Source: Dimorphilus gyrociliatus
Lineage: Eukaryota > Animalia > Annelida
Direction: 5' to 3'
Assembly (NCBI GenBank): GCA_904063045.1
Contig: CAJFCJ010000006.1
Coordinates: forward strand, 3,674,408 to 3,738,407
DNA length: 64,000 nucleotides
This document shows, in pieces, positions 6,005 through 38,040 of this stretch; position 1 is the stretch's first letter, and each line of letters opens with the position of its first letter. A model generated the notes under the pieces. That model searched no databases. It was not told the DNA's origin and saw only the letters and a list, made by a program, of their open reading frames with translations. The position numbers and the translations under genes are program-made.

Positions 6005-8005
6005 ATGGACCGCGAAAATGGAGCTAAATGCATTACTGCAGATAAAGTTGTGATAGCAGTTTTAGTAAGCTGCGTTAGTGAGTTTAGCGATGTTGAATGT
6101 ACTGTTAGACCATCGCAGAATATTGTAAAGTTTTCTGAAGATCAAGAACGCAAGGCGTTCTTCCTCCTATTAAAATATGTCAAATCATGTATTCTTCCAA
6201 GCTTTTCTATATTATGTCGTGAAGTCGATAGTGTTGGGCATCAGCCATTCATCGATATGTTCACAACAGACATAAGGGAACTAACTGATGAAGAATTAGC
6301 TGTGGAGAAACTGCATCAAATTTTTTCCAATCTAGAAAGTCAAAAAGTTGAAACGGGATCTAGTACTGTTATAGGATTTTTTTTCCGTCGATACTTAATG
6401 GCATTTGACTATCTGCAATTCGAAGATACAGCTGATTTGTTGCGCGATGTTAAACTTATTGTTGATGGAAAACTTATGAGCGGTCCCAAAGACACTTTCT
6501 TAGAAGAGCAAGCTAGAATGCTAGAGATAGACGAAAGAAAAGTAGCCCGACCGGTCGAATTGCAAAATATGATAAATGTAAGCTCTAAAGATATTGCTCC
6601 ATTCGTTGCCTATATGAATGCAATGAGAGTAAAAGACTTTCCTGACGCTCTATTTCATTTGCACGCTTACTTTGATAAGAAATACACAAAAAAAACAGAT
6701 ATTTGTGGTGCAGTCTTGGCTCATGCAGGTGCACATTCTTCTTTAGGAATGACACAAAGTGTTGAAGAATGTATGACTGAGTCAGTTGAGGTAGCCCCAC
6801 CTCCTCTTCCTCCTCAATCTCAATCAGCTTCTCATCATCTACCTCAGTCGCCATTTCTAAGTGTTCTGACATGGTTACCCGGTGTACCGAATCTTATGAA
6901 TGTTTATCGTCAACAATTAAGTCGAGCTATGGATATTAAAGACCCAAAACTTGCTGCCAAAATAAGTATTCATGCAACTGTAGCTATGTGCCGTTTAGCT
7001 CAGACAAACAAAAATTTTTCACTGGCTGGTTACATTCAGTTATTAAATCACTGTTCAAATTATTTACATAACGAAAACGATGGAAATTTGCTAGCAGCCA
7101 CTAAGGCTGCATTATTCTATAGATCATCCTTGCCATCTTTATCTGTTGTCTCCTATACTAGCGTTTTATCAGACGTAACTTGTAACGGTGAGTTGCAAGC
7201 AAAAGCTATTGTTGGATTAGCTAGATTGTTTTCACATCGAACGAAATTCTTAGAAAAGCTCTTCGAGCATGCTGCTAGACGTTTCCCACGCTATTCACGC
7301 TACTCAGAGCTCATTGAAGAAGAAAAAGCCAAACTATTAAGACTACCAAAAGTTCTTAGAGAAAATAATATTCCAAAGGCTTACGCTCTTGCGAGTGATG
7401 TTCATAAGAACGATGATACTAAAAGTATTATTACTATATTGTTAGAATCTGAACGTTACGAGGAAGCTTGGAAAATGTTAAGGCTAACAACTAATGAGGA
7501 TATTCTTCCTGTAACGAGGGTGAAGTTATTAGCCTTTGGTGCTACTCTATTACAGTTCACATCACAGGTTGCCTTAGAACCGCTTACACAAGCACTTATC
7601 TTCTGCGATGACTATAACATGTGTTCAGATGAAAAGACGGATATCCTTTTGAGGATCTGCTATCAATTATTGGCTATGCGATTACCAACAAAAGCTTTAT
7701 GGATTGCGAAACAAATGGCAAAAATGAAATGTTTAAATGTTAATAAAACATTAAACGAAGCGAAAATAATTAAGGCTAAAGCTTATTCGATCCTGGGACT
7801 ATTTCCTAAAGCCTTAGGAGTGTTGGAATTAATAGAAAGCGACTGTTTCTCAACCGAAAAACTTATTGGATTAACATATTTTAGAGCAAGACTTTACGAT
7901 GCAACAGGACAGATGAGAAAAAGAAACGAGCAGTCTCAATATTTGAGTAAACTTATTGGATCACGACCGTATCGTTCTAGAAAACTATGTCTGTTGACAG
8001 TTTAG
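6005..8005 (+). CDS. ANAPC5: Anaphase-promoting complex subunit 5 homolog, single exon, divergent
   Basis: 666-aa ORF with APC5-like segments TADKVVIAVLV, STVIGFFFRRYLMAFDYLQF, FLEEQARMLEIDERK, VAYMNAMRVKDFPDALFHLHAYFDK, followed by TPR-like helices. Confidence 0.8.
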   Translation: MDRENGAKCITADKVVIAVLVSCVSEFSDVECTVRPSQNIVKFSEDQERKAFFLLLKYVKSCILPSFSILCREVDSVGHQPFIDMFTTDIRELTDEELAVEKLHQIFSNLESQKVETGSSTVIGFFFRRYLMAFDYLQFEDTADLLRDVKLIVDGKLMSGPKDTFLEEQARMLEIDERKVARPVELQNMINVSSKDIAPFVAYMNAMRVKDFPDALFHLHAYFDKKYTKKTDICGAVLAHAGAHSSLGMTQSVEECMTESVEVAPPPLPPQSQSASHHLPQSPFLSVLTWLPGVPNLMNVYRQQLSRAMDIKDPKLAAKISIHATVAMCRLAQTNKNFSLAGYIQLLNHCSNYLHNENDGNLLAATKAALFYRSSLPSLSVVSYTSVLSDVTCNGELQAKAIVGLARLFSHRTKFLEKLFEHAARRFPRYSRYSELIEEEKAKLLRLPKVLRENNIPKAYALASDVHKNDDTKSIITILLESERYEEAWKMLRLTTNEDILPVTRVKLLAFGATLLQFTSQVALEPLTQALIFCDDYNMCSDEKTDILLRICYQLLAMRLPTKALWIAKQMAKMKCLNVNKTLNEAKIIKAKAYSILGLFPKALGVLELIESDCFSTEKLIGLTYFRARLYDATGQMRKRNEQSQYLSKLIGSRPYRSRKLCLLTV

Positions 8006-12336: not shown

Positions 12337-14929
12337 ATGGATAATCTCTTCATGATGGCCTTACTTTTCTGTTCTTGCTTAATATCGGAGGAAAGATTCG
12401 ATTTAACTGATAAGATCTATAATTTGGGTGATATTAATTTTGGCATTGTTACTCAAGTAAAGGACTATTCAAAGGCTTTAAAATGTACAAATAAGATAAG
12501 TCGTTTTGAATATCTTCAATATGTACAATCTTCCATATTCAGTGTTGATTATATAAATGAAAGAAAAGATTTGTTACCCAATTTAAATTTGGGTTATATT
12601 ATTTATGCTGATTGCGGCCGAAAGGATACTTCTCTGGCTGTTGTTACGAAATTCATTGAAGGGGCAGATGTCGCAACAAAATCAAATGTCAATAGAAATA
12701 ATATTACTATTTCATCGAAGTATTCTGTTGCTGGTGTTGTGGGTTTGACAACTAGCACAAAGGCCATTCCTACCAGTGCTATATTAAGCTATTACGAAAT
12801 ACCTCATATTAGCACTTCGGCTTCGAGCAGCGAATTAAACGATAAATACAGATACGAATATTTTAATAGAATGGAACCTGGAGACACTAGACAAGCCTAC
12901 GTAATGGTGGATTTATTACAAACTTTCAATTGGAATTACGTGTCGGTTGTTTGGCAAGTGACCGTTGGTTATCAGATGGTAATGACTGACCTATTTGAGA
13001 GAATAAACGAAGTGGGTATTTGCGTGGCAAGTCACAACAGTATCTACAATAACAGTACAGAGAGAGATCTAGAGGAAATTGCAGAAACCCTTATCGCGAA
13101 CACGAAAGCTAAAGCTGTAATATTGTGGATGTATTCCTCCTCCGTGAAACGTTTATTTTCCGTATTAGAAAGAAAGAACGCTTTACATAAATTTATCTGG
13201 GTATGTACAGGCGTAATAGATAGCGTTTATAAATCGTTTCCAAACTCTTTGAAAACGGGTATGTTTAGAGTGGGAATGTCATTGAATTTATCGGAAGAAT
13301 TAAAAGATTTTCTATCAGAGAGAACTCCGTTTAATTCAAATGGAACTGATTTACAATGGATGAAATTATTTTGGGAAAGTACTTTTCATTGTTCGTGGGA
13401 TAGAAATAGTAAAAATTCCTGCAATAAATACAAAACATTACCGAAATCTCCCAATTATTTTATATCTGTAAATAATGCTAAATATTTTGATGCTATTTTA
13501 ACAATGGCTTACGCCGTCAACTCAACAATCAATCAATACTGTCCAACAGTGTTTCTCAAGGCGTCTAAAAGAACTTATTTGAAAGATCACAGCCGCTGTT
13601 TGTCTGGCGAAAGAATATTGAAAGCAATTAGGAATTCGGATTTTCAGGGTATGACAGGAAGGATAAGATTTGATGAAAAAGGTAATGTTATTAAGCCGTT
13701 TGTAGTAAAGCAGATAATTTCAATAAATCATACTGAAGTAATTGCAATCTGGAAAAAGGAAACTGGATTTCAAAAGATTCGCTCTCCTTTTAGGCCAATT
13801 CCAGAGTCAATATGCAGTGAAGTATGTCCTGCAGGCTTTAAACCTGTTCCTTCCTACAAAGTTTGCTGCTGGTACTGCTTGGAGTGCTTGCCTAATCAAA
13901 TTACAATTAACAATGGAACTGATTGTCGAACTTGTCCAGATTCAACTTGGCCAGACTCTTTGAATAAAACTGTTTGCTTAGATTTAGTGAATAATTTTCT
14001 TCATTTTACAAACCCTATCGTCTTATGTTTGGCTATCGTTTCAGGAGCATTGATCGTCATAAGTTTAAGTCTTATTTATATGCTGTTTATTCGATTCTCT
14101 CATACTCAGGTGGTGAAAAACTCCTCAAAAGAGCTGTGCTTTCTTATCGTGAGTGGAATACTAGTGTGTCTAGCAACAATCTTTATATTAATAAGAAAGT
14201 CGACAAATATAGTTTGTATTATCGGAGTTTTCGGATTTCATTTGGGTGTAAATTTAACTTTTGTACCATTATTGATGAAAAGTCAAAGAATGTTCACTCT
14301 ATTTAGAGCAGCAGCAAAATGTCAGACAAAAGTTCCAGTTGCCAGAACTAAGTGGCAATTAACTGCAGTCTTAGTTCTTTTCCTATTCCAGGTTATTTAA
14401 AAATAAATGCATTAATGTTAACTAAGACATATACTGAATTTATAATTTCTAGGTAATTATAACTGGAGGGATGATATCCTTTTCGAGACCTGTAGCAAGA
14501 ACATCAATGCCTCTTTTGTGGGAACCTTATTCAGAGTTATATTGCGACATTCCAGTATTAACTATATGTATTCCCACCTCCTATAATCTATTAATACTAA
14601 TAGGAACATGTGTTTTTGGAATTGTTACCCGTAAACTCCCTGAAAATTTCAAAGAATCGAGAAATATTTGCATTTGCGCCTTAACAAGCATCATTTTATG
14701 GAGTGCCTTTTTGCCAACATATTTTCTAACTCACTTTAATTTATATAAAGGAACCTTACTATCATTTGGATTACTACTTCATTCCATTGTCCACTTGACA
14801 ACAATATTTATACCTAAGGTATACGCGGTAGCCGTTGTAAAAGATAACGAAGATTTTACAGTTACTTTCAGATACTCTCAAAAATCAAATCCTGTAAATG
14901 ATTCAACGATGCTACCGCTCTCCGGATAA
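12337..14929 (+). CDS. Class C GPCR (metabotropic glutamate/CaSR/taste-receptor-like), 2 coding exons (intron ~14393-14452)
   Basis: Signal peptide, Venus-flytrap domain (DLLPNLNLGY...DCG, YEIPHISTSASSSELNDKYRYEYFNR, FNWNYVS), 9-Cys domain (PESICSEVC...CCWYCLEC...CRTC...TVC), and 7TM with SSKELC, TRKLPENFKES and IFIPKVY. Confidence 0.93.

Positions 14930-24165: not shown

Positions 24166-24198
<33 letters not shown>
24164..24198. repeat. (CT)n microsatellite upstream of the SLC6 gene
   Basis: Direct reading. Confidence 0.9.
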
Positions 24199-24202
<4 letters not shown>

Positions 24203-24369
24203 TTCCATGTCTCATTCGGCCTAATATTATATTTGACAATCTTCGTTTTCAGTATGCTTGAATAAAAGTTACTTTTAACATATTCTACTTTTTCATTTCC
24301 TTTCTCGCTTTTCTTCAAACGCCGATTACTGATCGATTTTCACTACAAGGAGGTTAATTAGAATTACGT

Positions 24370-26880
24370 ATGGAAAACGGTGACGAAAAGGTAGGTAATT
24401 ACAAAAAAGAGATGTGTTTAATTGACTAACTAGGTATAACATAGGAGCTTTATGCTAACCTATTTCTAATTTTCATTAAGGCAAAGGTTAACTCTGATAT
24501 ACCCTCGGAAGAAGAAGATATTGCGGTTAGAAACCGAGGAGTATGGCGGAGCAAAATAGATTTTTTTATGGCATTGTTAGGATCATCTTTATGCTTTGGT
24601 TCAGTTTGGAGATTCGGTTACAATTGCTATAAAAATGGCGGAGGAGCTTTTATTGTTCCCTATTTTATATTTTTAGTGGGGGCAGGAATACCTACAGTTT
24701 TCATGGAGATGCTAATCGGTCAATACAGTAGTCAGGGAATACTATCCGTTTGGAATGTTGTTCCACTATTCAAAGGAATAGGCATAGGTTTCATTCTAGT
24801 TGCGTTCTTTTTATCAACATGGTACGGAATAAATATGTCTTGGACAATTCTTTATTTGACTCAGTCGGCCAAACAATCGCCCAATTTTATTAGCTGCTGT
24901 AATGATTGGAATTCGAAGAGTGAGTAGAGATGGTCTCTCATATGATTTATAATAAAATAATTAATCTTTTTCTTTATTAATACAAATATAAAAAAAGAGA
25001 AAGATTGCTATCTATACCTCTATTTCAAAAGATTTTGGGTGTAGACTTCCTTTTTAAGTTCCTATACCTTTCAAATTCATAAAGATCATAGATTCTCTTT
25101 TTCTAGTGTATAATTTCAAATAATTAAATATTATTTCATACTTAACAGAATGCTGTGAATCGCAAATAATGATTCAGAATTGCAGTACTAATTTATCATT
25201 GTCGGTACTTGTTAAAGAATGTACAATTTGTTTGAAATCATGCAATATTAATAGAACAAATGCAAGCCTTATTGGTAATTTGAAAACACCTTATCAAGAA
25301 TATTTCGAGTAAAAGTCTTTTAATTTATGCATGTTGATACACTTGGCCTTTTAATGTGAAAAAAAAAACAAAAAATATTCTAAAGTCGATTCTTTTTTTT
25401 TCTTTTTATAGAAACGAAGTACTCAGATCGTTTAGGTCATTTTACATGAAAGATGATTGGTACCTCCTACTTTTTCTTGTTGTAATATGGTTGCTCATAT
25501 TCCTAACTTTATTAGGTGGTGTACGAGTTTTTGGAAGGGTATGTTATTATGTTCTTTTCTTTTTGTCATTTTTAATTAGCTCTTTAACTAGTTCTTCATT
25601 TTAGATTATGTGCTTTACAACATCGGTAATCTATATTTCAATTTTCGGGTTTTTAATAAGGATTCTATTATTCGATGGAGCTGAAGTTGGCCTAAAAACT
25701 TTCTTAAGAGCCGAATGGTCAAAAATTGGCACTGTATCGGCTTGGTTTGATGCAGCTCAACAAGCTATTTTTACTTTGGGACCTTGTATGGGAAGTATGG
25801 TTACACTGTCCAGTCATAATAGATTTACTGATAATTCATATAGAGTTATCGGTATGATGACAATATGCATTGTTCTAACATCTTTTTTTACCGGAGTTAT
25901 TACATTTGGTTTATCGGGTTATTTGGCACATATGAGAGAGTCGCCCATTGCATTAATCTTATCTGAATCAGACTCCTCTTTCGTAAGAATACCCGAAGCA
26001 TTGTATGGTATTTCTTCATCGAAATTTTGGCTAATATTTTTCTACGTTAATGTATTTTTTAATTTTTTCAATGGAACTTCGGTTCTTGTCCACACTGTAT
26101 ATACTTCGATTGCTGATGAATTGAGTTTTATACAGCGTCGACTGAGAATCGCAATTCTAGCAACAATCTGCTTTACAGCAGCCTCTCTGGGCTGTATCAC
26201 AATAACAAGACAAGGCAGCTTTATGACAGCAATTATGGAGAATTATATAAATGGAACGTCTATTGCTCTACTCGGTTTCTTGGAAGTTGCTTCAATCTCT
26301 TTCTTCTATGGAGTGAATAAATTAAAATCAAACGTTACTATAATGATGGGATACAAACCTGGAAATTGGTGGCGAACCTTTTGGCAAATAATAGCTCCAT
26401 TTAGTTTTATTGTAGCTATTTCTCTTATTCAAATATCCATTCTTAATTATAATTATTTAATCTATTACCAGTTTATTTTCATCTATTCATCAGTTGACCC
26501 TTTCTACGAGGGTAGAAAGTTCTATTATAACCTACCAAGCAGCGGTAAAATTTTATTGGTCTGCCTCCATATTCTGACTCTTCTTCCATTGATTTTTTAT
26601 ATGATTTATTGTCTTGTAAGAAAAACACGAGGAACTTTTCGAGAAGTGAATAGCACATTACCCCTTTTTTTTACTTTTAGTTTGTCGTTTTTTTTCATGC
26701 TTTTTACCGCAGAGATTGAAGATTGCATTAAAACCGACAAAGAATTGGATTCCAGTATGGGATATCAGCGAATTACTGGTTGGCCCAATGCCAGACTATA
26801 TTAAATCCGAACAGGAAGAATTGAAATTTAAGTTGATTTTACCAAGAAGAAAAAGTTCTTTATTATCGAATTCTTCCGAG
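24370..26880 (+). CDS. SLC6 unit 1 (N-terminal, degenerate ion/substrate sites)
   Basis: [77 protein letters not shown]: an SLC6 fold with 12 TM and an uninterrupted frame. Confidence 0.9.
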
Positions 26881-29800
26881 GTTTGCATCTTTTTTTTTAT
26901 TCTCTAATTAATCTAAACTTCTTCTGTTTTCAATTTTTCTAATCTGTAGAGTGTTTCTTCGGTTACTAGCGGTTTGCCTCCTATGAGAGATGACGGTCAA
27001 TGTGGAGAAGATATTGACACATGGTCTGTCGATTGGGAGGATGATGAGAACAAGCGTAGGGGTAATTGGGGTGGTAGGTGGGAATTTTTCCTATCGGGAA
27101 TAGGTTATTGTGTGGGTATTGGTAATGTCTGGAGGTTTCCCTATCTTGTCTATAAAAATGGAGGCGGTATAGTTGATTTAAGCTTAGGTTCTTTTCCAAA
27201 TCAAAAAGATCTCTTATGTTTTTTGCAGGAGCTTTCCTACTAACTTACGTCTTAATTCTAATATTTTGCGGTCTACCCATTTTCTATATGGAATTGATTC
27301 TTGGTCAATTCTCTAGTCTTGGTCCATTGACAGTATGGAGATTTTGCCCACTTTTTAAGGGGACTGGGTACGCAACCATAATCACTTTAACCCTAGTCTG
27401 CATCTACTATAACGTTATTAACGCTTGGTCTATCTTTTACCTCTTCGCTTCATTTACAAGAGGAGAATTACCTTGGCGTTCTTGCAAAAATTCCTTTAAT
27501 TCATTAAGTAAGTGTATGCTAGGAAGAGAACAATAGAAGAAAAGATAATCTGTAAAATTGTGGAATTTTTTCCAGATTGTGTCGAAAGTTTATTAACTAG
27601 GAAAGTTTGTAATCAAACGTTTAATGATACATCTTATCCAATTGATTGTTTTCCTTATCAAAATACGACCAATTCATCTATTAAATTCTCTACTGCGGCT
27701 GAAGAATACTTCTTGTAAGATTTAACTTGCTTCTAATGCTTAATCAATAATTGTAATTATACTTTGATATAACACAGCCGATACGTGCTAAATAAATCTG
27801 ATGGGATAGAAGATGTGGGTAGTATTGAATGGAGATTGGCATTGTGCTTGGGATTTTGCTGGTTTTTAGTTGCTTTAATACTATTAAAAGGTGTAAAAAG
27901 CGCTGGAAAAGTTGTCTACGTGACGGTTATTTTTCCACTCGTTATTTTAATTATCATTTGTATAAGATTTACAACACTTGGATCCGATGCCTACCTGAAA
28001 GGTTTAAGATATTACATTACTCCTAAATGGGAACGCCTTTCAGATGCACAAGTTTGGAGTGACGCCGCAGCACAGCTGTTCCTTTCTTTAGGTTTATGTA
28101 TCGGGGGCGTTATGTCAATGGCAAGTTACAATCGCTTTCATTACGATTGCTTAAAAGACGCCTATCTTATCTGCTTACTTGATCTAATAACTAGTCTTTT
28201 CTCTGGATTTGTTATGTTTTCAATTTTGGGTATTATGGCGGAGAAATTGTCTTTGCCAATCAGCGAAATTATCACCTCGAAATTCTCTTTAATTTTTATT
28301 GTTTGTCCAGAGGCATTGTCTGATCTTCCGTCGTCAAATGCCTGGTCCGCTTTATTCTATTTCATGTTAATTTGTTTAGCTGTTGACTCTCAATTTCTTA
28401 TGGTTCATTCCCTTGCAACTGCTGTTGTAGATGAATTCGAAAATCTGTTAAGAAAGAGACAAGTATACGTTGTAATGAGCATTTGTTTTATTTTATATCT
28501 GTTAGGCCTACCATTCTGTACTCGAAGCGGTTTCTACATGGTATATTTACTGGATTCATATGTTGTTAGTTGGTCTGTTGTATTAATTGGAGTCATTACC
28601 TGTATTGCTGTAAGTTGGATCTACAAAATGAAACTTTGGTCCTCTAATATTAGAGTAATGCTTGGTTCTGAGCCATCATTCTTTTGGAAAATTCAATGGT
28701 GGTTTACAGCACCAATTATACTAACTGTAAGTTGAAAGCCAGATTAAATTGGTTTATTTTTTATGCATACGTTTTCCTTTGATTTAGACTATTATGATCT
28801 TTGCGTGGGTTAAATACGAAGAGCCAACGGTTAATGCTTACTCATATCCACGTTGGGCAATAGGTATATCACTTTTACTGGGCTTACAACCGATGGCAGT
28901 TACAGTTGTAGGATTCTTTGTCCAAATATTAGGACGGTCAGAAGGATTTAAAGAGGTGAATAAAGTCGTTGAATTGTTAAATACCCAGAAATTTCTACTT
29001 TTTCCATAAATAATACATTAGGGTATTAGAGGAGCTCTAAAACCTAGTTCGAATTGGGGACCAGCACTTGCCAAATTTCGTCAAGTATGCGTTCTACCAT
29101 CAACGAACTCCACTATCGACTCATTAGATAGGACAGCTATGTGGGTCAAAGGTAATTGATTTACAATAAATAAACGAAAAAAATTGCGTGGGGTGTCGTC
29201 TATTTTTACTGTTTTTACAAGCCTATTTAGAAGTTTTAATCGCTTTTATAAATTTTTTATTACTCCTATTAAAGTAAGCTTTTCCCCAGGAATTTCTTCA
29301 GTTTTCGTTTCTGAACCCTTAAGCAACAAAGTACCTGATAAATCATTACATTTAAATGACTCGAAGCAAAAAGGACCACTCTACGATCATTTGGGAAATC
29401 CGCTGGCCAGATCGAAAAATAACTCATCGGCAAGCCTTTTACCCAGAGTTGTCAGCTTTAAAATAAATAAGCAGAGATTGTTACCTGGGAAGACATCTCC
29501 TAGTATAAGCACGGCTTCGGATGATGGATTTACAAGAGTTGTCTTTGACTTGGACTCTCCAATTGTCACTCCAAGAAGAGTGAATTCTCTAAGTAATTAT
29601 CTAGTTTTCAATAATTCATAATGTATTATCTAGATTCTTAATAAATAAAAATATAAATAGGAGAAAGATCGGTGAGAAAGGAAAGGAAAAGACGCCGAAG
29701 CAGAATGAGAATTATTGAAGAGAACGTTAAATTTGCAAGAGATAAAGCGACACAAACTGAAAACGGGGCGGAAACTTCTTCAATATCTAGTCGGCAAAGT

Positions 29801-29938
29801 CCAGAGGGTAGTGATACACCAACACATCCACTTAACAATTATAGGGTTTTGGAACCTCGAATAAGAATAATAGAGAATGGAGGATTCGATAATAAAGCCT
29901 TTCAGAAAGACGAGACACCTGTAGAAACCAAACTTTGA
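24370..29938 (+). CDS. Fused double SLC6 (neurotransmitter:sodium symporter) transporter, predicted 15 exons, ~1452 aa, 24 TM
   Basis: Exons 24370-24390, 24481-24919, 25149-25308, 25412-25538, 25605-26411, 26472-26645, 26713-26880, 26950-27166, 27229-27507, 27576-27714, 27778-28726, 28788-28955, 29022-29151, 29290-29592 and 29661-29938 are all GT-AG and phase-compatible (sum 4359 nt). There is no stop between the two SLC6 units when intron 26881-26949 is spliced. The protein ends ...PVETKL*. Confidence 0.75.
26950..29938 (+). CDS. SLC6 unit 2 (C-terminal, amino-acid-transporter type) with long cytoplasmic tail
   Basis: [101 protein letters not shown]. Confidence 0.93.
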
Positions 29939-30003
29939 CTACAATACTGCCTATATATACAGTATATATATAGCTTCTATATAAACACATCGATAATGTA
30001 AAA

Positions 30004-30010
<7 letters not shown>

Positions 30011-30048
<38 letters not shown>
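30011..30048. repeat. (TA)n microsatellite
   Basis: Direct reading. Confidence 0.9.
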
Positions 30049-30051
<3 letters not shown>

Positions 30052-30632
30052 TTATATATATATATATATGAAGACGCATTTTTTTTTAAAAAAAAAGTCC
30101 TATAAAAAAATGTAATTACATTTTTCTGATTTAGCGTAAAGGTATCTTTGCTAAATTTACCTTTTTAGCTTGTATTCATCTGTTTAGAGGTCAAATAATG
30201 AATACATGAAAGCATAAACATATATTTGCATATACCTTGCAATTGCATTTGAACCTGTTACTCTCTATCCCTTTCTCTCTTTATCTATGTTTACCATATT
30301 TTGAACACCTTTAGTATGTTATAAATACGTATATGTTTATTTATTATATATAAAATCATATATATAAAGTATATATATAAAGTATATATATATATATATA
30401 TATAAACAAAAGGTTATACAAAATGTGCACCACAACGAACATAATGCTGATTTTATTTGATAGAATAAAAAGATGAGAACAACAATAATAATTTTATGTT
30501 TTTTTATATTTTCGGAGAAAGTTTTCCATTGTCTTTATCATCGTTTTCTTTGGAAAAAAATTTTCTTTTGTTTCTTTTTTTTTTTAAAAAAAAAATTAAA
30601 AAGAATTTTATTTAAATCTTAGCACATAATTT

Positions 30633-32450
30633 TTAAACGGCGGGTGTTATAGTTACAGTTCTGTTTCCATTTTGTTTATGATCGTGATTTCTCACTGCTC
30701 CGTGTCGATTAATCTGAACTTTGCGTTTTCTAGATCCATATTTATACCAGTATATCACTGCCAGTATAACGACAATTACAGCAAGAACGGGTACTATAAC
30801 GCCAATAACTATACCGGCTATGTTTCTTCCAGATTCTTCGCCGCTCCCTGAGCCTACGACGAAAGGAGAGCGAGTGATATTCGAAGTTACTATGTCCGTG
30901 TCAGCTGTAGTTGTCATGACCGTTGGACAAGCCTCCGATTTTAAACTTGAATTTTTGAAAGCGTTACCCGCGTCGTTCTTGGCTATGCACCGGAATAGCA
31001 GCAATGTACTGCAACCAGTTTTTACCACACCCTTGTAGTTTGCACTCCCTTTAAACAAGACTGTTATGTTCGCTAGAGGGCTTATTTGTACCGAGATATC
31101 TGGGAGAGGATCTCCGAAGCCCGTACAAAAGAATTCAATGCCATTTAGTATTTGTTCTATAGTAAAAATTTCAATTTTAGGCACAATGCATTTCAATTCG
31201 TGACGCCTTGACAATAATTCGAAATTTGACGGAGTAGAACAAACGCCAATTTTAAATCTCCTCCTCTGTCTTAAATCAATAGATAAAAGATAATCTTTTA
31301 ACCATTGAAGTTGGCAATTACAATGCAGTTTATTATTAGTTATATCCAATTCTCCTTTGTATAACTTTAAATAATGTTGATAAGTAATTGGGACAGATCT
31401 TATAAAATTGTTCCTTAATAACAAACGTCTTAATAATCTATTGACGTCGAATAATGCAAAATCGAAAAATTCAATCTGATTGTTTGATAGTTCGATTATT
31501 GTTAGATTCTTGTTGTGTTTGAATGTTGTCGACTGAATACCAGTAATGGCGTTATATTGTAGGTCAATAGCACCTAAATTACGACCAAATTTAAAATCGT
31601 TATCTCTTATCTCTCTAATGGAATTTTTCTGTAGACCAATAAATTGAAGAGATTCTGACTGATATCTATTAGAAATTTCTGTAAGACCAATATTATTGAG
31701 GAGTAAGTCCTTAATTCCAGTAACTCGATAGAGAACATTCCAAGCTCTATCTGATATCTCATTATCACTTAAATCCATTCTCCCCTCAGACATCTCTAAT
31801 CCATATAGAAATTCAATGTCCTTGAAATGGTTACCTTTTAAGGAGAGCTCTGAGAGAGATGTTCCAGTAAAAAAGCCCAAGGGCATATTTAAGGGTTTCG
31901 TATTGTAATTAATGTGCACAACTTTTAACGAAGCCTTTAAATTATCAATAAGCTTTCGTTGTAAACGTTCGATAGATAATTGGTTGGCATATAAAGACGT
32001 CAAATTTCCATCAAAAGCCAATGGATTTAAATCTTTTAATAAATTCCGTGATATAGAAAATAAATTCAAATCCAAACCTTTTAATAAATAATTAGGCAAG
32101 CTGGAAATCTTGTTATCAGCCAAGTACAACTTTTTCAAATTATATAGACCGTGAAAAGAGGTTGAGCTTAATTTTTCTATTTTACAATTGCTTAGGTCCA
32201 GCTGTTTTATTGAATTATAGGTAGAAAATTGATTGTTACCAATCTCCTTAATTTGGTTTCCATTCAGTAGTAAAGTCCTAATACCGTCCGGTATATTTAA
32301 AGGTACAGTAGTTAAATTCCTATAGGAACAATCAACAACAAATCCACTGCAATTGCATAATATAGGACAGCACGTTGCAAAACCCATCAACTCTACAAAG
32401 AGTAGCACGTCGATAATAGCCAGGAGATGGAAGTTTAAGAGATCTTTCAT
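30633..32450 (-). CDS. LRR + Ig-like type I membrane protein (LIG-type), single exon (the ORF opens at 32516; the signal peptide fits Met at 32450)
   Basis: MKDLLNFHLLAIIDVLLFVELMGFATC signal peptide, LRRNT CPILCNC...VDCS, LxxLxLxxNxI repeats, LRRCT NKLHCNCQLQWL, Ig-like CTGFGDPLP...RCIAKNDAG, TM IAGIVIGVIVPVLAVIVVILAVIYW, and a short tail. Confidence 0.9.
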   Translation of the reverse strand: MKDLLNFHLLAIIDVLLFVELMGFATCCPILCNCSGFVVDCSYRNLTTVPLNIPDGIRTLLLNGNQIKEIGNNQFSTYNSIKQLDLSNCKIEKLSSTSFHGLYNLKKLYLADNKISSLPNYLLKGLDLNLFSISRNLLKDLNPLAFDGNLTSLYANQLSIERLQRKLIDNLKASLKVVHINYNTKPLNMPLGFFTGTSLSELSLKGNHFKDIEFLYGLEMSEGRMDLSDNEISDRAWNVLYRVTGIKDLLLNNIGLTEISNRYQSESLQFIGLQKNSIREIRDNDFKFGRNLGAIDLQYNAITGIQSTTFKHNKNLTIIELSNNQIEFFDFALFDVNRLLRRLLLRNNFIRSVPITYQHYLKLYKGELDITNNKLHCNCQLQWLKDYLLSIDLRQRRRFKIGVCSTPSNFELLSRRHELKCIVPKIEIFTIEQILNGIEFFCTGFGDPLPDISVQISPLANITVLFKGSANYKGVVKTGCSTLLLFRCIAKNDAGNAFKNSSLKSEACPTVMTTTADTDIVTSNITRSPFVVGSGSGEESGRNIAGIVIGVIVPVLAVIVVILAVIYWYKYGSRKRKVQINRHGAVRNHDHKQNGNRTVTITPAV

Positions 32451-33666
32451 TGCATTCTTTCTTCTCCGAGACTTTCCTGTATCGCGTATCGAGTACACAC
32501 TATTAATGCTACACATATTGATTTCAGCCTATATAACCTATTCTTTCATCCCTATACATTTTTACGAGATGCTAATCACGTTTTAGCATGCCAAACATAA
32601 AGAAAATCTCCTATATCATTTTATCGTTCATTATACATAGATATATTTTAAGTTGGAAGTAAAAAAAAATCATTAACCTATAAAAATTAATATTTACTTA
32701 TCTAAAAAAAAGAAAAAACAAACTTGACAAACTTCTTTATATACAGTAAAAAAAAATTTTTTTAAATGTATTGGAAGAAGAAGAAGAAGAAAAAGAAGAA
32801 GGAGAGTAGGTGTAATAAAAAAGTATAAATAAACAATTCTACTTTTTGAATGAATTGTTCAAAAACAACGGATAGTACTATATATTAATATTTTAAGAAT
32901 AGTACGTAGAGAGGTATACATGTATATAACTGTTCTTATATATATAAATCATTGTATAAATATAAGCAACTTTGCAGCTATTGATTGATATTTAAAAAAC
33001 AAATCACAGTTATAACAAAAAGTGTTAAAAATTGAGAGAAAATTTCTTTATATATGCACCTTAGAGATCTTTAATAAATCCTATATATATTAAGAATCTA
33101 TGTATAAACATGTATCATACTACACCTGAAAAATCACGCTCTGTAGCATCTCCCAGGAATGTAGCGTTTTCTGCTACGTCACATCGATGACTAATAACCA
33201 GGTAAGTCCGTGCACAGTAGGAGAAAACAGTTATGCATACATGGGGCTTGATTATAGTCTTGTCTATGCGGCAGAGAGAAATAGAATTGCTGACTCTTTA
33301 ATATATTAAATTCTTAATAAAACTCTATTTATATATATTTATTACGTAAAATGCACCAAATGTGGTTATACGCTTAAATTAAGTATAAATAGTTCACATC
33401 TGTTTTCTTTTTTTTAATACTTTATACCTTCATCTTACTCTTTTCCCCTATATAGTTTTTTTTATAATATTTGCAGTTTTTTTTTCTACACAACTATATA
33501 CAACGGTCTTCTTTGTTTTCCTCTCCCCTCTTCCATCATTATTCATGTATCTTTTGTTTATATAATGCAACTTTCAAAAATTGTATTTATTTACCGTATA
33601 ATAATGAAATATAAGAATAAAAAATATAAAAAAAAAACAAAGTAATTCTAAAAGATTATACTTTCT

Positions 33667-36600
33667 TTATTCCATCTGAAGCTTTCGAAATTTTTTAGCA
33701 ATTTTCCAATTTCTAATAGCAAACGCTGCTAGTATAATAATAAAAAGGCAGATAAGCGAGAGTCCTACAGCTAAGTAGATTGTTGAATAGTCTGTTGAAT
33801 CTCCAGTAGAGTTAAGAGATTGTTTTTGAGGTGATGTAGTCTTTATTGATGTTTGTGTAGTTCGAGTCTGAGGGTCTTCGGTACTCTTGGATCGAATATT
33901 AATGATCTTAGTTTTACTAATGATTCCCGTACCGTTGGTAGGATTGGAAATGTCGCATCTTATAATTAGTCTTATTGTATTTTCGGTGTATTCGTAAGAG
34001 ACGAGCGCAGCTCCTCTACTCTCCGAAGAAGTCTTTCTTGTTCCAGAATAGCCTTCATCTTCTATACTGATTCGCGCACTATTTGAACAAATATCCCCAT
34101 TTCCACAGGAGACATCTACTCTCTCATCGTCCATAGTATAATTGAAGGAAATAATATCTCTAGGTGAACAGTTAAACCCTTCTCTAGGCATTTCATTCAA
34201 TAACCTTACTTGATCAATCTGAATAAGACAATACGGTGCGCTTATATTCTCATTACCGTATGACCACTCATAAAACCAAGCAACGTTGCAATCGCAGGTA
34301 AAAATATTTTCATTCAAATCAAAATATTTCATTGCAGGCCATATTTCTCCTATAGGTTGATTTGGCTTTGGTATAGTTTTTAACAAGTTTGAATTAAGGA
34401 ATAAACTTCTCAGCCTACTTCCAAAACCAGTAATGATATTTGCATCAAAAACAGAGATCTTATTAGAACTGAGTATAAGTACTTCCAGATTGGGAAATTT
34501 TTTTGAAATATTCAATTGATTTAGATGGGTAATTGAATTTTCTTTTAAATTCAAGTGAAGAATTTTAGGCATACTGGGCAATTGATCAATACTTATTAAT
34601 TTTGAATTGGTAATATTACAATATCGTAAAAAAGTCCAATCCATTTGTGGATGTAGTGGTAAACTTTCAAAATGATTATGATTTATTATAACATCAGTTG
34701 TTCTCACTCCATCTAGGAATTTTAGTTGAGATATTTCAGTATTAGACATATCTAATCTTTCCATTGCTTGTAATGTTGAAAAATCTAAACTATGCTGTAA
34801 TTTTGCCATAGGTATTGAATTAATGGCTAGATGACTGACATTCAAATGCATAACTACTTCTGACGGATCCCAATCAGATAATTTTCTGTTGTTACTGAGG
34901 AATAAATTCCTCATTGTTGAATTGGAAAATACACTATGATGAAGAGATTTCAACTGTAATGAACGAAGGTCAACGGTTATTAAGTGGAGACCTCTTACAA
35001 AATTTCTAGGCAGTTCTTGAATACCATTTGTAGACATTGAAATGTACTGTAGTTCGCGATTGTTTAAGAATATACCTTCCGGAATTGATTGAAGTTCATC
35101 GTTGTTCCAAATACTAATAGATTTTAGATTTCTCATCTTTGAAAAAGTATTTTTATGTAATGTTTTTAAATTACAATTCGAAAGTAGAATTTCCTCAAAA
35201 TTATCATATCCTTGAAATGATGAAGAGTCTAATACTTCCAAATTACCTTTATTAATAAACAACTTTGTAAATTGTGAATTAGCTGATAGTTTTGGTATTT
35301 CCATAATATTTTCATCGCTAGCTGGACAAGTAATACTTTGATCTCGACAATTACAGATTGTTGGACAATCTTCGTTTAGCGATGCTAGGGCTGGCGTATC
35401 GTCATCTGAAGGATTGCCAATATAGAAGGATATTTGATTAGAATTATCAGTTCTAATTGAGAATTGCTCATCGACTATTGTAAATTCTTGACTTTTGTTT
35501 TTGGAAGTAAATAGTTGTAAAGTTAATTTTTCGTTTAAATTACTTTTACACGTTAAAGAAACTTTGGAATTTCCCTTTTCAATAATTGTTACTTTTATTT
35601 TTGTTAGACTTTCTTCGATAGATGGCGCTTTAGTGCTTGTTGAAACGGCATTGGTAAGTGTAGTAGAGATGGGGGAGGCGCTAGTGGTTGACTCAGTGGA
35701 TTTTTTTGGTTCTTGAGACGACTCATTGTCACCCCTTGACGAAGAAGGCATTTGTGTAGTTGTCCATTGTAAACTGGATTTTTTCGTTTTACTTGACTCA
35801 CTTGTTACTTTAGTCGATCTTTCCTCTGTTACTTTCATTGTTCCTGCTGTGGTTGTGGCTTTTGTTGTTGTTGTTGTTGACAATGACGGTGACGTTGTTC
35901 TTGGTTCGGTATGATGTTCTGAAAGAGTAGAACTACCCTTTGATGATCTCCTAGTAGTTTTTGATTCTTGAGACGACTTATTGTCACCTCTTGACGAAGA
36001 AGGCATTTGTGTAGTTGTCCATTGTAAACTGGATTTTTTCGTTTTACTTGAATCACTTGTTACTTTTGTCGATCTGTCCTCTGTTACTTTCATTGTTGCT
36101 GCTGTAGTTGTGGCTTTTGTTGTTGCTGTTGTTGTTGCTGCTGTTGTTGTTTTTGACAATGACGGTGACGTTGTTCTTGGTTCGGTATGATGTTCTGAAA
36201 GAGTAGAACTACCCTTTGATGATCTCCTAGTAGTTTCAACGTTAACTGTAGTCTTAAAATTATCCATTGTTGAACTACTTTCAGGGAGAGGGGTAGTGGA
36301 CGGTGATGGGGTTAGGGTGGTTTTACTAAATGATTTAGTATTCACAACAGTTTTAGAGGTAGATGGAGTCGTCTCAAACTCTTTTGTTGGATTTGAGGAA
36401 GCTTTTAGAGTGGTTGGCTTGGTAGTACTTGATTTTCTGGTCATAGTTGTAGGAGTTGGCTGAGATCTTGTGATACCGAGTAGAGAAGTTAAGGTAATTA
36501 CAGCATCTACTGTATCCTTTTCGTTCCGAGCAACACAATAAGCGATCAAGTCTGAATGGACGCTGTTATCCCTTGTGTAAACGACTGATAATCTATTTCG

Positions 36601-38040
36601 CTTAAATTTCGGATCAGGATTCCGAACAGTAATTTTCTCCGTTTTTATAAGACCGTCTTCGCGGAAATGAATCTGAAGCATCGGTAAAGGATCGCCAGTT
36701 GCTTCACAAGTTAGTCTAACTGAAGTTTTCCCTATCAAAAACTTTGAGAAAGTCACAATTTGAGCCGCTACGCAAGAGAAATTTGATTCCTTCATATTAA
36801 TAAAATGACTAAACTGTGGCGTTTGACATTTAGTAGAAAAGAAAGAATAACTTCTTTGAGATTTTAGATAGTCATAAAGCCACCTTAGTTGGCAATTACA
36901 ATGGAATTTATTTCCGTTAAATTTCAATTGTAGTCCGTCCTGTAGCATGTCTGTCAATTTCTTTGAAAAGCCATGTTGTTCATTATATATTGTACGAAGT
37001 TTGCAGTAGTTAAAGTTAGCCGTTTTTAAATATGCTACATCTCTTGGGTGTAGTTCCGTAAAAAGATTATTAGAAAAATCAACCTTTGTCATTAAAGGGA
37101 ATAAACCAACTAAACCCTGACTTGGAATGGATTCTATTTTATTATAGGCAGCAGAGAGGGTTTTAATACGTGGGAAAGCTAGGGATAACAGATGTAGATC
37201 TTTCAAGCCAGTAGTTTCACAACTGAGGCTGTCTATACTAAAATTTGATGATTTTGTACTACTCCAATCAATCTGATTATTGCTTATATCTAGGTGTTTT
37301 GTGGTCAAGCCATTAAGTTTACTTAAATCCTTAAGGCCTGCGTTTCTCAATATTAGCTTATCCAAGCGTAAATTTTTGAAGGATAATCTGTTTTCCGGGT
37401 GAACGACGGGAACATTCGTAAAAGATACAACTTTAATCGAATTTCTCATCCACTGAAAAAACTCTCCGTTTGTCATTATCAGCTTGCTTGAGTTGATTAC
37501 AATCAATTCCTCAATCATTGCGTCAATAAATATGTCTCGTCTAATTTCTGTTAAACGATTAAAACCTATTTTCACCAACTTCATTGAATTTCCCCCAAGA
37601 AAACCATAATCAATAGTATGAAGAGAATTTCTCAGAAGAATCAAGGAACGAAGAGAATCTATTCTTCTAAACACATTTGCTCTAAGACGTTTGAATTTAT
37701 TACCAATTAGCGAGACTGATTTGATGGCTTTAGCCTCCCGGAAAGCTCTTTCTTCGATATCATACAACACCGAATAGGAAATAGTAACAGTCTCCAAGAA
37801 ATGATTATTCTTAAAGGCGTCATCCGGCAGCTTTTCAACCTTTGAATCAGTTAGAGAGAAAGACGTCGTATTAAGAGGAAGTGAAGGGAAATCGCCTTCA
37901 TAATCATAGCAGTCGACGTTTAATTTCCATCCTTCATATGTACAATCGCACCGTTGAGATTCTTCACAGATATTTTGGCGAGATAGATGGAAAATGACGA
38001 TAAATAATAGAGTCTTTAACAAAATACACTTCATCTTCAT
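33667..38040 (-). CDS. Large double LRR-Ig type I membrane protein with a central Ser/Thr mucin-like stalk, single exon, 1457 aa
   Basis: Signal peptide, LRRNT-LRRs-LRRCT (FHCNCQLRWL), Ig (TCEATGDPLP...YCVARN), Thr/Ser-rich region, second LRRNT (CPTICNC)-LRRs-LRRCT (FTCDCNVAWF), Ig-like segment, TM (IYLAVGLSLICLFIIILAAFAI), and a 15-aa tail. Confidence 0.9.
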   Translation of the reverse strand: MKMKCILLKTLLFIVIFHLSRQNICEESQRCDCTYEGWKLNVDCYDYEGDFPSLPLNTTSFSLTDSKVEKLPDDAFKNNHFLETVTISYSVLYDIEERAFREAKAIKSVSLIGNKFKRLRANVFRRIDSLRSLILLRNSLHTIDYGFLGGNSMKLVKIGFNRLTEIRRDIFIDAMIEELIVINSSKLIMTNGEFFQWMRNSIKVVSFTNVPVVHPENRLSFKNLRLDKLILRNAGLKDLSKLNGLTTKHLDISNNQIDWSSTKSSNFSIDSLSCETTGLKDLHLLSLAFPRIKTLSAAYNKIESIPSQGLVGLFPLMTKVDFSNNLFTELHPRDVAYLKTANFNYCKLRTIYNEQHGFSKKLTDMLQDGLQLKFNGNKFHCNCQLRWLYDYLKSQRSYSFFSTKCQTPQFSHFINMKESNFSCVAAQIVTFSKFLIGKTSVRLTCEATGDPLPMLQIHFREDGLIKTEKITVRNPDPKFKRNRLSVVYTRDNSVHSDLIAYCVARNEKDTVDAVITLTSLLGITRSQPTPTTMTRKSSTTKPTTLKASSNPTKEFETTPSTSKTVVNTKSFSKTTLTPSPSTTPLPESSSTMDNFKTTVNVETTRRSSKGSSTLSEHHTEPRTTSPSLSKTTTAATTTATTKATTTAATMKVTEDRSTKVTSDSSKTKKSSLQWTTTQMPSSSRGDNKSSQESKTTRRSSKGSSTLSEHHTEPRTTSPSLSTTTTTKATTTAGTMKVTEERSTKVTSESSKTKKSSLQWTTTQMPSSSRGDNESSQEPKKSTESTTSASPISTTLTNAVSTSTKAPSIEESLTKIKVTIIEKGNSKVSLTCKSNLNEKLTLQLFTSKNKSQEFTIVDEQFSIRTDNSNQISFYIGNPSDDDTPALASLNEDCPTICNCRDQSITCPASDENIMEIPKLSANSQFTKLFINKGNLEVLDSSSFQGYDNFEEILLSNCNLKTLHKNTFSKMRNLKSISIWNNDELQSIPEGIFLNNRELQYISMSTNGIQELPRNFVRGLHLITVDLRSLQLKSLHHSVFSNSTMRNLFLSNNRKLSDWDPSEVVMHLNVSHLAINSIPMAKLQHSLDFSTLQAMERLDMSNTEISQLKFLDGVRTTDVIINHNHFESLPLHPQMDWTFLRYCNITNSKLISIDQLPSMPKILHLNLKENSITHLNQLNISKKFPNLEVLILSSNKISVFDANIITGFGSRLRSLFLNSNLLKTIPKPNQPIGEIWPAMKYFDLNENIFTCDCNVAWFYEWSYGNENISAPYCLIQIDQVRLLNEMPREGFNCSPRDIISFNYTMDDERVDVSCGNGDICSNSARISIEDEGYSGTRKTSSESRGAALVSYEYTENTIRLIIRCDISNPTNGTGIISKTKIINIRSKSTEDPQTRTTQTSIKTTSPQKQSLNSTGDSTDYSTIYLAVGLSLICLFIIILAAFAIRNWKIAKKFRKLQME
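35710..36236. repeat. Near-identical in-frame tandem duplication (~251 and ~272 bp copies) inside the mucin stalk
   Basis: Copies at ~35710-35960 and ~35965-36236 both encode TTRRSSKGSSTLSEHHTEPRTTSPSLS..T..MKVTE.RSTKVTS.SSKTKKSSLQWTTTQMPSSSRGDN.SSQE. They differ by a few substitutions and a 21-bp indel in the poly-Thr/Ala tract. Confidence 0.95.

Follow-up and report, generated by a model that had tools for sequence, protein, structure and literature searches.

Here we describe a gene of the annelid Dimorphilus gyrociliatus that encodes two complete SLC6 transporter units in one polypeptide. The gene spans positions 24370-29938 of the forward strand within a 64,000-nucleotide (nt) stretch of genomic DNA (GenBank assembly GCA_904063045.1, contig CAJFCJ010000006.1, positions 3,674,408 to 3,738,407), which is hereafter denoted the window, and consists of 15 exons that form one open frame of 4,359 nt. 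Very probably, this is a single gene, the main product of which is a protein of 1,452 amino acids (aa) that comprises two LeuT-fold units of 12 transmembrane (TM) segments each, namely, a degenerate N-terminal partner (unit 1) and a presumably active C-terminal unit (unit 2). The gene thus departs from the SLC6 norm of one 12-TM unit per polypeptide, the two units being present in one frame and in one complementary DNA (cDNA) contig. The product is most likely a covalent pseudo-heterodimer. This term had been proposed in an earlier reading of the sequence alone (the sequence-only reading); the fusion that it implies is supported by the present data, but the two halves are not equivalent, with unit 1 lacking the ligands of the Na+ sites.

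The two units meet at a short intron. The linker exon (26713..26880), located between two phase-0 introns and supported by cDNA, encodes 56 aa (...PDYI...SNSSE) and ends in SLLSNSSE at 26880 without a stop codon, as is directly seen in the sequence. It is followed by a 69-nt intron (26881..26949), hereafter the junction intron, which has a GTTTGC donor, a T-rich tract, a CTAAT element and a TGTAG acceptor, and connects phase 0 to phase 0. If this intron were not spliced, the frame of unit 1 would stop at the TAA at 26905-26907; the first ATG of unit 2 is located at 26983-26985, and there is no AATAAA between the two. Most of these features had been described in the sequence-only reading, the sequence details of which were all found to be correct, and so had a model of 15 phase-compatible exons with 4,359 nt and approximately 1,452 aa, which was reproduced independently when the gene model was reconstructed, manually and with a script, from the window sequence. 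A 14-exon version comprises 4,419 nt, and excision of an in-frame 60-nt intron (26412..26471) converts it into the 15-exon form. The exon boundaries are GT..AG throughout, and the four intron positions said to be common to both units, that is, in extracellular loop 2 (EL2; phase 1), at the EYF motif (phase 2), in TM11 (phase 0) and after TM12 (phase 0), were recovered as well. The gene resides in an AT-rich (~33% GC), gene-dense animal genome, in which introns are mostly 61-69 nt long. D. gyrociliatus is a miniature annelid with a median intron of 66 bp and no trans-splicing (PMC7854359).

The fusion is supported by assembled contigs from public sequencing runs (denoted X1, X2, X6 and X10) that were aligned with the window. 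In X1, one contig of 4,565 nt with no mismatches to the window extends from about 24175 to 29949, spans both units and joins 26880 to 26950. All 14 introns are removed from this contig: 12 of the 14 joints are listed, including 26880/26950 (69 nt, GT..AG) and 26411/26472, and for the remaining two (29152-29289 and 29593-29660), excision follows from the length of the contig and the placed pieces. The removal of the introns of the double-SLC6 gene identifies X1, for which no kind is recorded, as cDNA. By comparison, the contigs of X2, a DNA run that is probably the source of the assembly, are collinear with the genome, retain the junction intron and contain no such joints; a processed DNA copy therefore does not account for the spliced form. 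The RNA of a second organism (X10), which is ~95% identical to the window over the contig, yielded a 370-nt contig joined at 26645/26713 and at 26880/26950. The junction that the sequence-only reading had singled out for verification was accordingly found in the X1 cDNA and in the relative's RNA, the shorter side of the joint measuring 166 nt in the former and 90 nt in the latter. An excision that follows GT..AG exactly and connects the final exon of unit 1 to the initial exon of unit 2 requires RNA in which both units are present. In X1, there is no loose end or contig start at 26950, and the region is covered by no cDNA contig other than the joined form; there is neither a contig that terminates after 26907 nor one that starts near 26983, and in the relatives the units are fused rather than separate. 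The depth of X6, the RNA of a relative, shows spikes of 600-1,100 at 24598-24796 and 26986-27184, which correspond to the conserved TM1 motif (GNVWRFPY...NGGGAF) of each unit; these spikes are due to cross-mapping from paralogous SLC6 transcripts and do not reflect expression of the double-SLC6 gene.

The genome of a related species provides a further line of evidence. The nearest database match to unit 1, obtained in an exhaustive representative search, is a 282-aa open reading frame (ORF) of a relative, called on Logan contigs, with 75% identity; neither an entry for the window's own full-length protein nor any annotated protein of the genome that contains the window was found in the protein collections searched, and a profile that included the window exons had matches only in molluscs and insects. 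The whole locus could be aligned to a 21-kb genomic contig of the relative (L001) with 74-78% nucleotide identity, and the projection of the window exons onto this contig yielded 15 exons, with every GT and AG kept, and an open frame of 1,456 aa. In the exons that flank the junction, the two species differ mainly at third codon positions, and the differences are mostly synonymous. The junction intron is 61 nt long in L001 vs 69 nt in the window as a result of two deletions, and the GT..AG boundaries as well as the unusual GTTT donor are kept. The codon corresponding to the first ATG of unit 2 (PPMRDD in the window) is GAG in L001 (PPEKDD), which lacks any in-frame Met from the junction up to TM2, so that in the relative, unit 2 could not be translated alone without losing TM1.

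The ratio of nonsynonymous to synonymous substitution rates (dN/dS), estimated with the Nei-Gojobori method between the window and the species of L001 (dS ~1), is 0.106 for the core of unit 1, 0.089 for the core of unit 2 and 0.061 for the C-terminal tail. For the whole linker, the value is 0.076, with 0.065 for the linker exon that precedes the junction and 0.096 for the linker part of the exon that follows it (36 codons, aa 633-668). Both units, the linker and the tail are subject to purifying selection. Unit 1 is not a decaying pseudogene, and coding sequence of the linker flanks the junction on either side; it includes the 33 nt upstream of the ATG at 26983, which in a separate unit 2 gene would belong to the 5' UTR.

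Each unit covers the SLC6 domain nearly in full. The Pfam SNF profile (PF00209, 524 positions) is matched twice, from position 1 to 523 in unit 1 (segments 1-128 and 205-523) and from 1 to 520 in unit 2 (segments 1-36, 38-128, 161-473 and 476-520), with expectation (E) values from 1e-97 to 4e-4; the completeness of the 12-TM units was judged by this coverage, a hydropathy count being too crude (it missed TM1 and TM6). The PDB matches of both units are SLC6 proteins throughout, and a look-up in the ESM Atlas confirmed the SNF assignment and added nothing further. The two units are 31.5% identical to each other across 559 aligned residues.

The gene, with all features on the forward strand, starts with a 5' untranslated region (UTR) that extends at least over 24175..24369, where the cDNA contig begins 25 nt upstream of 24200 and remains collinear to exon 1; this stretch contains a (TC)n tract and short upstream ORFs. 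Exon 1 (24370..24390) carries the start codon and encodes MENGDEK (cDNA joint 24390/24481). Exon 2 (24481..24919) encodes the N-terminus and TM1-TM3 of unit 1 (SNF 1-128, E 6e-41), including a TM1 motif that is degenerate in the alignment to BGT1 and TauT (GSVWRFGY vs GNVWRFPY in canonical transporters). Exon 3 (25149..25308) extends from EL2, which is Cys-rich and contains N-glycosylation sequons, to the EYF motif (cDNA joints 24919/25149 and 25308/25412), and exon 4 (25412..25538) encompasses TM4 according to the gene model and the cDNA contig. Exon 5 (25605..26411), assigned from SNF 205-523 and the alignment to human NET, spans the region from TM5 to the start of TM11, where it is interrupted by the 60-nt GT..AG intron noted above (cDNA joint 26411/26472 in X1), the position and phase of which match those of the TM11 intron of unit 2 and of a scallop intron. 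Exon 6 (26472..26645), supported by cDNA and kept in L001, completes unit 1 with TM11-TM12 and ends with GTFRE.

Downstream of the linker exon and the junction intron, exon 8 (26950..27166) encodes the acidic part of the linker preceding TM1 and the canonical TM1 of unit 2, and ends in phase 1 within NGG/G (Pfam and GlyT2 alignment). Unit 2 continues with exon 9 (27229..27507), which encodes TM2-TM3 (profile and PDB alignment, cDNA), exon 10 (27576..27714), which encodes EL2 (gene model and cDNA), exon 11 (27778..28726), which contains TM4-TM11 (SNF 161-473, E 1e-97; GlyT2 alignment, E 2e-80), and exon 12 (28788..28955), with TM11-TM12 (Pfam and cDNA). Exon 13 (29022..29151) corresponds to the post-TM12 region; its 5' joint in X1 is 28955/29022 (listed as 28953/29020, the cut being shifted by +2), and its 3' joint to 29290 was obtained from the lengths of the X1 pieces. 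The cytoplasmic C-terminal tail is encoded by exon 14 (29290..29592), supported by X1 pieces and by contigs of the relatives (X6 and X10), and by exon 15 (29661..29938; gene model and cDNA), which includes a basic cluster and ends with ETKL followed by TGA. Altogether, a cytoplasmic linker of ~100 residues joins the two units, and the tail of 240 residues ends in TKL, which is predicted to resemble a PDZ ligand. Just 3' of the stop codon, a dispersed repeat lies beside a (TA)n tract (region 29952-30070), with 29952-29985 matching many other X2 DNA contigs; the X1 cDNA contig diverges from the window at ~29969.

The ion, substrate and gate sites of the two units were compared, in LeuT numbering, using HMMER alignments to solved human transporters and a family alignment that included the window, the relative and six molluscs. 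In unit 1, the changes are N27S, N286I (TM7), Asp to Asn and Ser to Gly at the Na2 site (TM8), G24C and Y268H; the residues that are kept are R30, the Glu equivalent of D404, R5, W8, Y108, Q250, F253, T254, D369 and the Cl- site. Unit 2 retains a canonical TM1, the Na2 Asp-Ser pair, the R30/D404 extracellular gate and the R5/W8/D369/Y268 intracellular network, and deviates in N286D, in F253L, which affects the gate Phe, and in an Ile at the position of the Trp in the GlyT2 TM6 motif SAAWGG. The Na1 side chains (N27, T254 and N286) are accordingly Ser, Thr and Ile in unit 1, where the site is lost, and Asn, Ser and Asp in unit 2, where it is altered. The Na2 side chains (LeuT T354/S355; Asp-Ser in eukaryotic transporters) are Asp and Ser in unit 2 and Asn and Gly in unit 1, and the equivalents of the Cl- site of SERT (Y121, Q332, S336 and S372) are Tyr, Gln, Thr or Ser, and Ser in both units. 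Unit 2 contains Gly rather than Asp at the monoamine position and hence belongs with the amino-acid carriers; its best PDB matches are GlyT2, GlyT1, PROT and DAT, at ~40% identity. The N-terminal (N) units of the molluscan proteins described below have also lost the Na+ ligands, through other replacements, along with R30, Q250 and the gate acid. These residue patterns suggest that, in the N units, the fold is conserved and the constraint on the ion and substrate site is relaxed.

The same architecture exists in molluscs. Look-ups and a length-restricted search identified, in at least 12 mollusc species, two-unit proteins of 1,250-1,720 aa with the same layout, nearly all of which are named "uncharacterized protein". 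In the representative search, the relative's ORF was immediately followed in rank by several proteins (1,093-1,699 aa) that were matched in two stretches. The double SLC6 is represented in scallops (Ylistrum, Pecten, Mizuhopecten and Argopecten), oysters (Saccostrea, Ostrea and Crassostrea), other bivalves (Pinctada, Mytilus, Sinanodonta and Tegillarca) and a snail (Physella); examples are XP_060064335.1 of Ylistrum balloti (1,573 aa), Pecten maximus LOC117329281, Ostrea edulis LOC125680508 and XP_059161224.1 of Physella acuta. In a maximum likelihood tree, a single clade (UFBoot 98, SH-aLRT 90) unites the C-terminal (C) units of the window, the relative and the molluscs, and in all the C units of the window, the relative and the six aligned molluscs, Asp replaces the Na1 Asn (LeuT N286); quick trees had resolved neither unit before inclusion of the relative's sequence. 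The linker carries a motif, W-x-P-x12-P-[DE]-Y-[IV], which directly follows TM12 of the N unit. Of the 210 proteins compared, 18 contain this motif, all of these being members of the fused family, the window protein or the relative's, and it was found in none of the single-unit SLC6 proteins in this set. The C-terminus conforms to [ST]-x-[LF] in the window and the relative (TKL in the window), in scallops (TQL), oysters (TKF), Physella (SKL) and Octopus (TKL).

The gene structures are consistent with this relationship. In the scallop Ylistrum balloti (genomic locus L004, ~98 kb), the linker motif is encoded in a 62-aa exon (aa 675-736) flanked by two phase-0 introns, and the exon that follows ends in phase 1 within NGG/G, exactly as the window exon 26950-27166 does; because this arrangement of the linker exon and the next exon is shared, the junction intron is positionally homologous in the two species. 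The exon logic is the same notwithstanding the difference in size, the junction intron being 17.4 kb long (L004 58488-75896) in a gene of ~98 kb in the scallop vs 69 nt in a gene of 5.6 kb in the window. The 11 mappable window introns and the junction intron coincide with scallop introns, with equal phase in 9 of the 12 and the scallop phase not recovered for the remaining 3; many of the coincident positions are probably ancestral to SLC6 in general. The window gene is a divergent member of the double-SLC6 family. As the counterpart of a family that is conserved in molluscs, it points to an ancient fusion, and we consider a single event of this kind much more probable than independent fusions. 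Between scallop and oyster, the N units are 44% and the C units 67% identical, that is, the N units evolve about twice as fast.

The models of the Octopus bimaculoides gene LOC106884409 (P0055 / P0206) begin within EL2 and hold only a unit of the C type and the tail, which ends in TKL; either the model or the gene itself may lack the N unit. The 1,227-aa protein XP_041349165.1 of Gigantopelta aegis was considered as a candidate relative and rejected: its two SNF units are both canonical and SERT-like, share 57% identity, and cluster with a SERT-like paralog from G. aegis that has a single unit and is the sister of one of the two. This double protein either arose by a recent tandem duplication or fusion or reflects a merged gene model, and it has no connection with the family of the molluscs and the window.

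Several observations weigh against a single gene with an active C unit and a degenerate N unit. Assembled contigs can merge overlapping transcripts and drop rare isoforms, so that single-unit isoforms might exist. The junction donor, GTTTGC (26881-26886), is the weakest of the 14 and the only one with T at +3; its counterpart in the relative is GTTTAT (L001 11306-11311), so that a weak donor has been kept in two species at dS ~1. Such a donor could allow intron retention and a product consisting of unit 1 only, and because it is conserved, a regulated isoform of this kind is conceivable, in which unit 1 would end after 9 more codons (18 in the relative). The mollusc proteins are predicted gene models, and the one from the scallop would require the splicing of a 17.4-kb junction intron; the N units of the window and the molluscs are only 21-26% identical; and the free tree, which has long branches, contains no clade of N units, although the constrained tree is worse by a log-likelihood difference of only 0.70 and statistically indistinguishable from it (p = 0.474 in the approximately unbiased test), so that monophyly is neither supported nor rejected. 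Finally, unit 1 keeps R30, Q250, F253, T254, Y108, D369 and the E404 equivalent, and might still bind or move something.

These considerations bear on three alternative explanations. The units could belong to two separate tandem SLC6 genes, with the joined form being a minor read-through product or with the acceptor at 26949 being used for spliced-leader trans-splicing of an operon. The gap of only 75 nt in the unspliced form and the weak junction donor would fit this explanation, and contigs cannot provide isoform ratios. Nevertheless, we find it very unlikely: the sole cDNA contig over the region is joined, with no loose end or start at 26950; no poly(A) signal separates the units; in the relative, neither the ATG at 26983 nor any alternative Met ahead of TM2 is found; the 36 linker codons after the junction, 11 of them upstream of this ATG, evolve under in-frame purifying selection (dN/dS 0.096); and the fused layout, with its linker exon, is also present in molluscs. 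As for an operon, the cis donor is used in the cDNA of two organisms. That the join is an artefact, that is, a chimeric transcript assembly or a genome misassembly of two paralogs, might be suspected from the reliance on contigs and from the cross-mapping of paralogous SLC6 transcripts at the conserved TM1 motif that is apparent in the X6 depth spikes. Against this, the 69-nt excision follows GT..AG exactly in two organisms, the shorter side of the joint being 166 nt long in X1 and 90 nt long in X10, and the same arrangement exists in two independent DNA sources (window/X2 and L001), so that the probability of an artefact is negligible.

A third possibility accepts the fused protein as real and holds that both units are active, unit 1 having a non-canonical coupling such as H+ coupling, uniport or another ion geometry. 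The strong purifying selection on unit 1 (dN/dS 0.106) favors this explanation, and so does the retention of R30, the Glu equivalent of D404, W8, R5, Y108, F253, T254, Q250 and the Cl- site. However, all four examined side-chain Na+ ligands are replaced in unit 1, and G24 is Cys; furthermore, the mollusc N units have lost the extracellular gate pair and Q250, differently in each lineage, as is typical of a transport site under relaxed constraint in a fold that is maintained, and evolve about twice as fast as the C units. We therefore regard two active units as improbable, although less so than two separate genes, and favor one active C unit with a degenerate partner. Which unit transports, and what role the degenerate one plays, are inferences, whereas the fused transcript, the conserved frame, the selection on all parts and the substitutions at the sites are directly supported by the data.

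Under the favored scheme, the C-terminal unit would be a working Na+-coupled transporter of the amino-acid type, from the GlyT/PROT branch, in which the Asp at Na1 that is common to all C units may alter the Na+/Cl- coupling. The N-terminal unit would keep the fold, most likely without canonical Na+-coupled transport, and could serve as a built-in partner protomer in cis that contributes to folding, export from the endoplasmic reticulum (ER), stability or allosteric control. Because both termini of a 12-TM SLC6 unit are cytoplasmic, a linker of ~100 residues from TM12 to TM1 is topologically compatible with such a fusion. SLC6 proteins oligomerize, and oligomerization is linked to ER export; the covalent fusion would supply the oligomeric state that other SLC6 transporters reach non-covalently. 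The TKL end of the tail suggests anchoring of the PDZ type. More tentatively, the N unit can be envisaged as a conserved pseudo-transporter, a regulatory or ligand-sensing protomer that allosterically controls the C unit in cis, with the fusion predating the split from molluscs; we see this as a possible but rather doubtful elaboration. If it were correct, a physiological SLC6 dimer interface would be fixed in one chain, and the coupling of protomers would be important enough for hard-wiring.

The sequence-only reading had described the architecture as not known to be characterized. This holds insofar as no paper on a natural two-unit, 24-TM, tandem or double-SNF SLC6 protein was found in the literature searched, the coverage of which was incomplete; it has to be qualified insofar as such proteins are already present in databases as uncharacterized mollusc proteins. 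The double-SLC6 architecture is unstudied rather than unseen, being represented in databases only by uncharacterized or mislabelled predictions. SLC6 transporters, including SERT, DAT, GAT and GlyT, are major drug targets, and the role of non-covalent SLC6 oligomers in function and trafficking is a long-standing question that has so far been addressed by means of artificial concatemers. The double SLC6 offers a ready test case that is natural and of considerable evolutionary age, in which one half is degenerate and selection has kept a second LeuT-fold unit that probably does not transport. The tandem defines the pairing of the units and would provide a single-chain target for cryo-electron microscopy of an SLC6-SLC6 interface. 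Besides, the analysis flags a conserved family in commercially important bivalves, the members of which are now labelled "uncharacterized" or mislabelled as glycine transporters.

The neighborhood of the double-SLC6 gene in the window contains approximately one gene per 6 kb and many long intron-free exons. Upstream, there is an exon of a class C G-protein-coupled receptor (12337-14397, forward strand; 687 aa), which is similar to metabotropic glutamate receptors and contains the ANF_receptor, NCD3G and 7tm_3 domains. Its counterpart, P0203 (68% identity), is located on a contig of 21,338 nt, and L001 is equally long, which suggests conserved synteny upstream of the SLC6 gene. Directly downstream, on the reverse strand, there are two large single-ORF proteins with leucine-rich repeats (LRR_8, LRRNT), of 627 aa (30633-32516) and 1,457 aa (33667-38040). 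Farther upstream, a 666-aa ORF with a weak match to ANAPC5 (6005-8005, forward strand) and an exon encoding a WD40 beta-propeller (3375-4427, reverse strand) were identified.

The double-SLC6 protein can be compared with several known systems. Among the solved transporters, GlyT2 (9wbr), GlyT1 (8wfj) and PROT (9wml) most closely resemble unit 2, which matches GlyT2 with an E value of 2e-80 and ~40% identity and shares with these proteins the canonical TM1, the Na2 and Cl- sites, the gates and the Gly at the monoamine position. Unit 2 differs from the GlyT branch in the replacement of the Na1 Asn by Asp, the gate Phe by Leu and the GlyT2 TM6 Trp by Ile; moreover, GlyT1, GlyT2 and PROT contain one 12-TM unit per chain and form non-covalent oligomers, whereas in the window a degenerate unit is fused upstream. 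The mollusc double-SLC6 proteins share with the window protein the succession of a degenerate N unit and a canonical C unit, the linker exon, the Asp at Na1 and a long tail. The window protein is shorter, its EL2 is small, the introns of its gene are short, and the mollusc linker block LTANLYIPN is absent; R30, Q250 and the gate acid, which the mollusc N units have lost, are retained in the window N unit, and the Na2 Asp, replaced by Ser in bivalves and by Ile in Physella, is retained in the window C unit. Two further parallels can be drawn. Engineered SLC6 concatemers likewise contain two homologous modules in one chain but are laboratory constructs, and pseudo-heterodimeric ABC exporters likewise combine modules one of which is conserved without its catalytic ligands, but in that case the degeneracy affects the ATP sites.

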